The translations under genes and the position numbers were made by a program. Positions 32,394 to 53,998 of a stretch of 64,000 nucleotides of DNA are shown piece by piece; the stretch's first letter is position 1; the number at the start of each line of letters is the position of its first letter. Where the stretch lies: NCBI GenBank assembly GCA_002104945.1, contig MCFH01000039.1:124001-188000 (forward strand). Reading direction: 5' to 3'. Origin of the DNA: Piromyces finnis finn. Taxonomy: Eukaryota; Fungi; Neocallimastigomycota. The notes under the pieces were generated by a model. It saw nothing but the letters and a program-made list of their open reading frames with translations, searched no databases and was not told the origin of the DNA.

Positions 32394-32700
32394 AGTTCAA
32401 TGAACTATGCAATTCGTACTGTGTAGGATTGGTCTCTTCTTAATAAATTAAATGAAATAAAAAAGAAAAGCAACATCAGGTAGGATAGAAAGGTGTCTAC
32501 TAAACGCTCCCATGAGCTCATAATGTTTTCATTTGAATTTGAGGAAATACTAACATTGAACCCTGTGTACAGAACATTAGGAATGCTCCTTTGCCATGTC
32601 GGTATGACGTCAAGAGGGTATTGAATGATTTTTAAACTTTTTTGAATAATGAAAAAGCAAATTCCATTTCTAATAAACAAAAAATAAAGATCAATCATAA
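32394..32700 (-). ncRNA. Paralogous structured non-coding segment C
   Basis: Minus-strand hairpin GGAGCAUU-CCU-AAUGUUCU (32571-32589); an 18-mer identical to A (32444-32461 = 31606-31623); terminal hairpin AGUUC-AUU-GAACU plus UUUU. Confidence 0.38.
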
Positions 32701-48984: not shown

Positions 48985-49082
48985 AAGGTAATAATTACAA
49001 TCTTTTCTTTAACTTCCGAGTACATTTTTCCCATCAATCGGAGTTAGCTCCAATGGAAGGTAATAATTACAATCTTTTCTTT
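48985..49082 (-). mobile_element. 46-nt 5'-truncated copy of the 52.7-kb element's 3' end (49011-49056) inside a perfect 26-bp target-site duplication
   Basis: AAGGTAATAATTACAATCTTTTCTTT at 48985-49010 and 49057-49082; the reverse complement of the insert matches 53158-53203 at 43/46. Confidence 0.85.
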
Positions 49083-51609: not shown

Positions 51610-52686
51610 ATATTAAAATAATTTATCTTTTTTTTTTTTTATATATATATATCACCAACAAAAAATTTAATGTATTATTACAATTCCATTCCGATTCAAT
51701 GATTCATGAAAAAGAAATGGAAGATATATATATATAAATCATTTATTTTTTGTTTATAGTTATTGATACATTTAAAATTTAAAAATAAAATAAAATAAAA
51801 TATATAGTAATCCATGAAAAAAAAAAAAGTCAATCTATGTCTTTTTTTTTATTATTATCAATATCCAAAGGATGGTATATTATTTTTAAGGTGTAGTAAA
51901 ATAAGATAAAAAATATTTTATATTTTATGCAAGTAATGTATACATAATGTAATAAATTTATGTAATGTATTAACTTGTAGAAAGTCGTTAATGATTAATG
52001 AATTAATCCCAAGATAGGATCTGTTATTATAAGAGATTGTGTCATAGGTATAATAGGTAGAAATAGAGTAGAAATTGTTAAGAAAAATAAGTTCAAGTAA
52101 ATAGAGAGAAAGAGTGTGAGCTTAACAACAAGCAATTAATAAAATCTTTATAAGAAAAAAACTTTTAAAGCATTTTTGTCATTTTGTAAGAAGTTACTTA
52201 TAAATAAATTATAAATAACTTCTACAAATTAATAATAATTAAATAATTAACTATTACTAATTTGAGAAAGAAAATGAAAACATTAATTTCGAGTTTATTA
52301 TATAAAAATACTAATAAACAAAAATATTAAATATTAACACTTAAATATAAAAGCACACGTTAGATAAACACTACTTTTAAATAATTAATACTTTATTTAT
52401 TAATAAATTTATATAATAATAACTCTTGATTTCTCAAAGAGAATCAAGATTATTCTTTTATAGTAACTTAATACATTATACATGGATTGGTTAAAATGAT
52501 ACAACTAAATTAATGTAATAAAACAATGTATTTAATCAATGTATTTAATCAATGTATTTAATTAATATATCAAATTATGTATTAAATAATGTATTAAATA
52601 ATAAATAATTATAAAATATTATAATAAATATTAAGAAAAATAGATAAATTATATAGAATTTATCTATGTTTCTTACACATTTTATT

Positions 52687-53213
52687 GTCGTTCCAGTTTT
52701 TATCCTGGTTGTTAAGGCGTTTCCTTAGCATAAGGCTTCTGGTTTGACTCCGCAGATGTCAGTGCTCGTGGATTTTCCCACTGAGTTTGCCACGGGTTGG
52801 GTTATAATATTCAGGTAAGTATTAATGCACTTTCTAATTTACTACTATGATATTAACACTTGTCTAGCCGGCCTGAGAGGGTCAAATGTACATGGTACAT
52901 TTTCAAATTAGAATTTATAAAGTGGTGATTTAGGCTATGCCAAAAACACACATTTAAGTGTAAACATTAGTGGGCGGTTGATGCATGATCATATTGACGA
53001 TAAGAGGCTTAGCATTGTAGTTGTGAAATATCGTACAACGGTATGCATCTAATGTACATGGATTAAGAGAGCGTCGAAGCTGAAGAAACAGTATGACAGA
53101 CCAGGAGGGTCACAACCACCTAGCAATAGGAATGAGCCAACGTTTCTCTAAGAACCACCATTGGAGCTAACTCCGATCGATGGGAGAAATGCACTCGGAA
53201 GTTAAAAAAAAAA
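52687..53213 (+). mobile_element. Candidate tRNA-derived SINE or Pol III structured RNA (~520 nt, A-tailed)
   Basis: GC-rich non-coding island. D-arm/A-box-like TATCCTGGTTGTTAAGGCG (52701-52719), B-box-like GGTTTGACTCC (52741-52751), many hairpins, a 3' stem-loop then A10, and a truncated 3'-end copy with TSD at 49.0 kb. Confidence 0.6.
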
Positions 53214-53383
53214 TTCTATCATTTTATTAGAATATTCTTTTTTATATTAAAAAAAATTTAATTTAAAATTTATAAAAGAGTTTTTTTTACAATAAAAACC
53301 CTTTTTTTTTTAAAAAAAAAAAAAAACTTTTATCAATTTAAAAAATAAAGAAATTAACAAAAAAAAAAAAAAAAAAAAAAAAA

Positions 53384-53998
53384 ATGGAAAGTAAAACTTG
53401 GGATAATTTTGCACCTTTTTACAATATTTTTATGAAAAAGGATAAAAAAGCGTATGATGAAATGTATCGTTCCATTCAAAAAGTTGTTACCAACAAAGTA
53501 GTATTAGAATTGGCAACAGGTACTGGATTAATTGCAAAAAATATAGCTAGTGTTGCAAAACATATTGATGCCACGGATTATTCCCCAAAAATGATAAAAC
53601 AAGCCAATAAAGGTAAAAAACCTAGTAATGTTTCCTTTGAAATTCAAGATGCCACTAATTTAAAATATGCGGATAATTCCTATGATGTGGTTATCATAAG
53701 TAATGCTTTACACCTTATTCCGTCACCTGAAAAGGCAATTGCTGAAATAAAAAGAGTTTTAAAGGATGATGGTATTTTGGTTTGTCCAAACTTTTTAAAA
53801 AGGGATTTGAATCAATTGCCATTAATTAAAAAAATTGCAATGAAATCAATTAATAATTTAGGTTTTCAAACCGTTCATCAATGGTCAGAAGAAGAATATT
53901 TAGCATATTTAGAATCTCAAAATTTCGCCATCTTGAATCATAAAGTATTAGATTCTACTCTTCCTTTATGCTATGTTGAATGTAAAGAGAAAAAATGA
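53384..53998 (+). CDS. Class I SAM-dependent methyltransferase (UbiE/Methyltransf_11/25-like), intronless, bacterial-like
   Basis: VLELATGTGL (motif I), ATDYSPKMI, YADNSYDVVIISNALH, EIKRVLKDDGILV; single exon of 204 aa. Confidence 0.92.
   Translation: MESKTWDNFAPFYNIFMKKDKKAYDEMYRSIQKVVTNKVVLELATGTGLIAKNIASVAKHIDATDYSPKMIKQANKGKKPSNVSFEIQDATNLKYADNSYDVVIISNALHLIPSPEKAIAEIKRVLKDDGILVCPNFLKRDLNQLPLIKKIAMKSINNLGFQTVHQWSEEEYLAYLESQNFAILNHKVLDSTLPLCYVECKEKK

Follow-up and report, generated by a model that had tools for sequence, protein, structure and literature searches.

A tRNA-headed repeat upstream of a methyltransferase gene

The window analyzed here, a 64,000-nt stretch of contig MCFH01000039.1 from the anaerobic fungus Piromyces finnis, contains a GC-rich interval, with a GC content of 33-41% across positions 52600-53199 versus about 12-25% in the surroundings. 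The interval carries an element on the forward strand whose body occupies 52687..53203 (517 nt, 91% identical by alignment to the 535-nt consensus of the young copies of its family), followed by a run of ten As at 53204..53213 that was identified by sequence inspection as a poly(A) remnant. From 5' to 3', the body comprises a tRNA-related head (52687..52762, consensus 1-80) with a leader of ~8-9 nt, a class-II-like D arm, and Ala-like anticodon and T arms; a non-coding middle body of ~315 nt (52763..53066, consensus 81-398) that has neither LINE similarity nor an Rfam family; a LINE-derived two-hairpin module (53067..53114, consensus 399-446) with sense homology to the last ~50 nt of a LINE ORF2; and a SINE-specific 3' region (53115..53203) ending ...CTCGGAAGTT, whose match to the LINE 3' region was not significant. 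Relative to the consensus, the window copy has two deletions, one of 4 nt in the anticodon-like loop (consensus 47-50) and one of 15 nt near consensus 270-284; its B-box-like motif at 52741..52751 (+) is mutated, reading GGTTTGACTCC in place of the GGTTCGACCCC of the young consensus.

The 9-mer CATTTTATT is found on the forward strand at 52678..52686, immediately before the head, and again as an exact copy at 53220..53228. The recurrence of a 9-mer with TSD geometry was observed for 1.3% of random window positions. An earlier reading made from the sequence only (the sequence-only reading) had described this repeat as a possible weak TSD; it is a real TSD, and the 10-17 bp TSDs found across the family support this reading. 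The same reading had correctly described the GC-rich island, the head motifs and the GGAAGTT-A10 end, as well as a truncated copy nearby. This second, 5'-truncated copy, on the reverse strand at 49011-49056, is 3.6 kb away from the first, corresponds to consensus 490-535 with 91% identity, belongs to the older subfamily by its C at consensus 506, and has a 24-26 bp duplication on either side (49057-49082 and 48985-49010).

Differences from the young consensus at position 506 (T>C), 141 (A>T) and 232 (C>T) were common to the window copy and other diverged copies. The window copy is therefore a member of an older subfamily, rather than merely a young copy that has decayed. We conclude that it is an old, inactivated member of a SINE family.

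The gene that had been placed 170 bp downstream was also found, with an ORF start at 53384. It occupies 53384-53998 (+), ~170 nt past the A-run, has no introns and encodes a class I SAM-dependent methyltransferase of 204 aa (Methyltransf_11, E 4.5e-23). Another dispersed repeat, at 32441-32611 of the window, was also observed at loci L048, L050, L052/L053 and L034, with copies that are 72-84% alike; in L034, it adjoins LINE 3' ends.

A recently active family with the hallmarks of retroposition

The source assembly (56.46 Mb, 232 contigs) was searched for related copies. At least 40 full-length matches were present among 920 first-look candidates. Genome-wide, 25-mers with up to two mismatches matched 210 heads and 301 tails, the tail 25-mer spanning the SINE end and the first five As, and reversed-pattern controls gave 0 matches. 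The sequence-only reading had held that a single-copy, syntenically conserved element would be a housekeeping RNA; these counts show that the element is multicopy.

Twenty-nine loci besides the window copy were sampled in detail. The element started at the same base, with GTCGTTCCAG, in 29 of 29 copies, and its 3' end (...GGAAGTT) was followed by pure poly(A) tracts ranging from A11 to A99. In 26 of these copies, a perfect 10-17 bp TSD bordered the 5' end directly and recurred after the A-run, and the flanks differed between loci without any relation. The 535-nt body was identical in 24 of the 29 copies and only 1-2 substitutions off in the others, so the last burst of this SINE was very recent. 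Older, diverged copies at 78%, 86% and 92% identity exist besides this young subfamily, and judged from their sequences, these successive subfamilies indicate long-term amplification, probably from changing master copies. The T|A motif at the target sites was uninformative, because the genome is 83% AT and the boundary between the A-tail and the TSD is ambiguous.

A LINE with the same 3' end was considered as the source of the extra ~90 tails and was ruled out, as 20 of 20 sampled tail-only sites were SINE copies without an intact 5' end. Their truncation points were scattered (2, 12, 19, 24, 26, 46, 55, 187, 217, 318, 335, 412, 420, 459 and 503), and no longer LINE or LTR element was reached from any of these 20 sites. 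Coding potential was also ruled out: the longest ORF in the 535-nt consensus encodes 37 aa, and all frames contain 9-17 stops each. Sharp ends, TSDs, A-tails, 5' truncation and the lack of an ORF are together what target-primed reverse transcription leaves when its template is a non-coding, non-autonomous RNA. With these unambiguous hallmarks, the family is a non-coding SINE spread by LINE-type retroposition.

Unusual head arrangements were also observed. On contig C150 (542372-542623, -), two independent pattern searches found three SINE heads in tandem, exactly 110 nt apart; this array may have arisen by tandem duplication of the head alone or may reflect an assembly artefact. The head variants CTTAGCATTCATAAGG and CTTAGCATATATAAGG mark additional subfamilies, for example at C13:497461, C46:259509 and C101:341990. 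Sites with the T-variant head were absent among the 25-mer head matches listed, and their 5' ends may differ.

The head is derived from tRNA

As the sequence-only reading had noted, no intact cloverleaf is present in the element. The Rfam tRNA model had no match at E<=10, even when the search was confined to 130 bases with the head, and ARAGORN found no tRNA in the window or in any SINE copy. The cloverleaf is gone, as judged from the lack of a match to the tRNA covariance model.

The head was then compared with native tRNA genes, namely the subset of the genome's tRNA genes that were read out. Consensus 24-79 is collinear with positions 17-72 of a native tRNA-Ala(UGC) (L037:664-737, -), with a score of 40 vs 17.2±3.4 for shuffled sequences, of which 0/1000 reached it. 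A global alignment of the head with this tRNA gave 43/72 identities with one 1-nt gap and placed tRNA position 1 at consensus 9-10, meaning that the SINE starts about 8-9 nt ahead of it; the rest of the SINE scored at background against the native tRNA. The two parts of the head resembled different tRNAs. Consensus 1-36 resembles the 5' third of a native tRNA-Ser, with a class-II-type D arm (25 vs 12.1±2.5, 0/2000 shuffles), and is unlike tRNA-Ala; for consensus 34-82, the 3' two-thirds of tRNA-Ala are a far better match (38 vs 13.2±2.7, 0/2000) than tRNA-Ser. The anticodon-type loop CTTAGCAT differs from the native Ala CTTTGCAT by a single change. The head is thus clearly derived from tRNA, and its sequence suggests that it may be a composite of a Ser-like 5' third and an Ala-like remainder. 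Two other sources were rejected: no canonical tRNA-Ala(AGC) gene was found by genome pattern search, and the anticodon arms of the native tRNA-Leu(CAA) and tRNA-Leu(CAG) genes that were read out do not match. The tRNA genes of this genome are highly multicopy, with 34 loci tied for the top score and tRNA-Ala(UGC) present at 18 sites; contig C191 alone carries 13 of the 24 sites found for a tRNA species with a UAU anticodon and a TTTAAGGCG D arm.

The B box of the young consensus, at 59-69, fits the canonical GGTTCGANNCC exactly and is positioned as expected from the tRNA alignment. A combined pattern of the anticodon-loop motif and the exact B box, allowing at most 1 mismatch, was found at 237 genomic sites. 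In the D-arm region (TATCCTGGTTG, about 15-31), ~6/9 of the specified positions of the A-box consensus (TRGCNNAGTGG) were judged by eye to agree, a partial match with tRNA-like spacing to the B box. The consensus contains only two T-runs of four or more, T5 at 11-15 and T4 at 91-94. Both could terminate Pol III, and the T5 run is the main argument from sequence against read-through; the length of 535 nt, which is long for a Pol III unit, also counts against a Pol III reading.

The element matches no Rfam family

Searches of the whole window with Rfam gave no family at the gathering score. In the region of the element, relaxing the threshold to E<=10 gave only chance-level matches to unrelated families and none to SRP RNA, RNase P/MRP RNA or snRNAs. 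An intron-like stretch at consensus 134-186 (GTAAGTAT...TAG) was considered as a spliced segment and rejected, as the joined form was absent from the contigs of four runs.

Public runs assigned to four organism codes contained contigs with SINE sequence, as did three animal gut metagenomes. The depth of SINE words was 3-6 in three presumed RNA runs and about 23,500 per unitig in a fourth such run, X4 (L004:1401-2150). The X4 depth reflects either RNA abundance or DNA copy number, and the contigs show presence of the sequence, not its start, strand or polymerase. Two loose ends in X4 showed Illumina adapter after short stretches rich in T, which points to a library of an unusual type. Two pattern scans of a metagenome contig collection for relatives of the SINE returned nothing.

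The SINE shares an internal hairpin module with an L1-like LINE

The genome contains many LINE copies with APE endonuclease and RT domains, with open ORF2 of up to 1478 aa. Among solved structures, their RT is closest to human LINE-1 ORF2p (E 4e-33 vs 1e-19 for R2). Comparison with five LINE copies, a set without the 3' ends of the youngest intact copies, showed that the last ~50 nt of ORF2 correspond in sense orientation to consensus ~400-450 of the SINE, at 85% identity. Independently, LINE coding sequence is linked to the SINE at consensus 401 in one contig from run X4.

The shared segment is internal in both elements. In the SINE it lies about 85 nt ahead of the poly(A), not at the extreme 3' tail, and in the LINE it is followed by a ~300-nt AT-rich 3' UTR ending ...GATGCCGTT-An, as compared with ...CTCGGAAGTT-An in the SINE. 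The terminal 85 nt of the SINE had no significant match to the LINE 3' region, as 166/1000 shuffles reached the score, and the head and the ~315-nt middle body had no similarity to the LINE sequence compared. With no similarity outside the module, derivation of the head, body or terminal tail from the LINE was rejected. A partner LINE with the same 3' tail had been proposed as a target of search by the sequence-only reading; an L1-like LINE does share sequence with the SINE, in the form of the internal module, but the extreme 3' tail differs.

The module folds as two hairpins. Across ten sequences, 97% of the cells were paired, versus 16-44% when the partners were slid. One compensatory pair was found, A-U in 6/6 SINE rows and G-C in 4/4 LINE rows; the other changes keep wobble pairing, and the covariation score was reached by 8/500 shuffles. 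These results support conservation of the RNA shape of the module as predicted from the alignment. The basis for this is one compensatory event in 10 sequences, plus C>T substitutions, for which a G-U pair arises automatically.

A near-young SINE copy in L034 (306-871) contains a 34-nt insert (raw ~470-510) that consists of T12 and the reverse complement of the last 13 nt of the LINE, followed by a duplicated stretch of the SINE. We read this insert as a LINE insertion with extreme 5' truncation and a TSD of its own. The nesting of a LINE 3' end in this SINE copy places the activity of the LINE lineage after the SINE insertion. The young SINE family itself indicates that an L1-like LINE was active very recently in this genome.

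Origin and mobilization of the element

The reading we favor for the interval 52687-53213, with a probability of roughly 85%, is an old and inactivated member of a SINE family with a tRNA-related head, most likely transcribed by Pol III and mobilized by the machinery of an L1-like LINE. This agrees with the central proposal of the sequence-only reading, a tRNA-derived SINE: copy number, TSDs, A-tails, truncation and a tRNA-related head were all observed, and the Pol III part is suggested by the promoter motifs. In the proposed mechanism, a master copy would be transcribed from position 1, most likely by Pol III, from an internal tRNA-derived promoter made up of the B box at consensus 59-69 and the A-box-like D-arm region at about 15-31, and the transcript would continue through the genomically encoded A-tail. 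The SINE RNA would then be captured through its poly(A) by the ORF2 protein of the resident APE+RT LINE, probably with help from the two-hairpin module, whose ~48 nt derive from the end of the LINE ORF2 coding sequence. Target-primed reverse transcription into nicked DNA would produce the 10-17 bp TSDs, the variable tails and the frequent 5' truncation. We infer that the LINE lineage mobilizing the SINE is this L1-like one. More tentatively, and at somewhat less than even odds, the SINE may be recognised by its L1-like partner through the internal two-hairpin module together with the poly(A), with no shared 3' terminus. If true, recognition of this SINE would fall between the 'stringent' and 'relaxed' classes of SINE-LINE pairs, in an early-diverging fungal phylum with a currently active SINE, and the LINE's own cis-preference signal would lie inside its coding sequence.

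Other origins were weighed against the same observations. The copies could be a swarm of retropseudogenes from an abundant structured host ncRNA gene, transcribed by Pol III or Pol II and accidentally retroposed by the LINE. The GC content of the element (42% vs about 17% for the genome), its sharp 5' end and the near-identity of young copies, which fits a single source gene, are in keeping with such an origin; however, no Rfam family was matched at any threshold, about 300 copies in successive subfamilies imply changing masters, and a piece of LINE coding sequence would be unexpected inside a housekeeping RNA. We therefore regard it as improbable. We give similarly little weight to a non-autonomous LINE derivative or SINE-like retroposon transcribed by Pol II, as proposed for Eg-R1-type elements, in which the tRNA-like head would be a relic and not a promoter. 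Such a derivative would account for the LINE-derived piece inside the SINE, and the internal T5 and T4 runs, the long 535-nt body and the lack of AATAAA are further points on its side. Against it, neither the 3.2 kb preceding ORF2 in L047 nor the other LINE parts compared outside the module resemble the SINE, the active consensus retains a canonical B box at the position expected for a tRNA, and, like Pol III precursors, the element has a leader of ~8-9 nt ahead of tRNA position 1.

The sequence-only reading had also named a fragment of a known LINE or LTR element as a finding that would refute it. A fragment of a longer element of this kind, or a chance GC-rich island, has a negligible probability, because the full-length copies share a 5' end of their own that abuts the TSD, their flanks are unrelated, and 0/20 tail-only sites enter a longer element; the shared 50-nt module, and nothing more, speaks for it. 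The tRNA-headed SINE remains the best explanation of the locus.

Comparison with known SINE-LINE systems

To our knowledge, SINEs have been described in a handful of fungi, all of them ascomycetes, and in the searchable literature we found no paper on SINEs or non-LTR elements in genera of anaerobic fungi. The family is young, with most copies identical and about 300 insertions in a 56-Mb genome, so it is likely to be polymorphic between strains and useful as a strain marker. It is also a source of insertional mutation near genes, as illustrated by the window copy 170 bp upstream of a methyltransferase gene, and, for a fungus that is used in biotechnology, the recent activity of an L1-like LINE is relevant to the stability of the genome. 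The hairpin module provides a testable handle on template choice by an L1-like reverse transcriptase.

The family resembles the 'relaxed' Alu/B1-L1 pairs in its long pure poly(A), 10-17 bp TSDs, 5' truncations and an extreme 3' end that is not shared with the LINE, and also in a partner RT that is closest to L1 ORF2p among solved structures. Unlike Alu, its head is tRNA-like and not 7SL-like, and it carries a LINE-derived internal hairpin module that is absent from Alu. The eel UnaSINE1/UnaL2 is a 'stringent' pair of a tRNA-derived SINE and a LINE with a common 3' stem-loop. As in this pair, the SINE described here carries a LINE-derived RNA segment with a preserved structure, plausibly serving as a recognition handle. 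In contrast to UnaSINE1/UnaL2, the segment comes from the coding end of the LINE, ~300 nt before the LINE poly(A) and ~85 nt before that of the SINE, and the terminal sequences differ.

In a report on SINEs with LINE-derived middle bodies, the described sources are the 5' regions of LINEs of the RTE and Vingi clades (Kojima 2018, PMC5786205). The present family shares with these SINEs an internal, non-terminal LINE-derived part, and differs from the sources so described in that its part comes from the 3' end of the ORF2 of an L1-like element.

Among fungi, MgSINE of Magnaporthe and Foxy of Fusarium are tRNA-derived ascomycete SINEs, with a length of 472 bp for MgSINE and about 100-160 copies (as summarised in PMC5063351). 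By the descriptions given there, they and the present family have in common a tRNA-related head, a non-coding body of several hundred bp, the copy number, an A-rich 3' end, TSDs and recent activity. As compared by description only, the present family differs from MgSINE and Foxy in its Neocallimastigomycota host, its length of 535 nt, its composite-looking head and the module derived from the end of a LINE ORF2.
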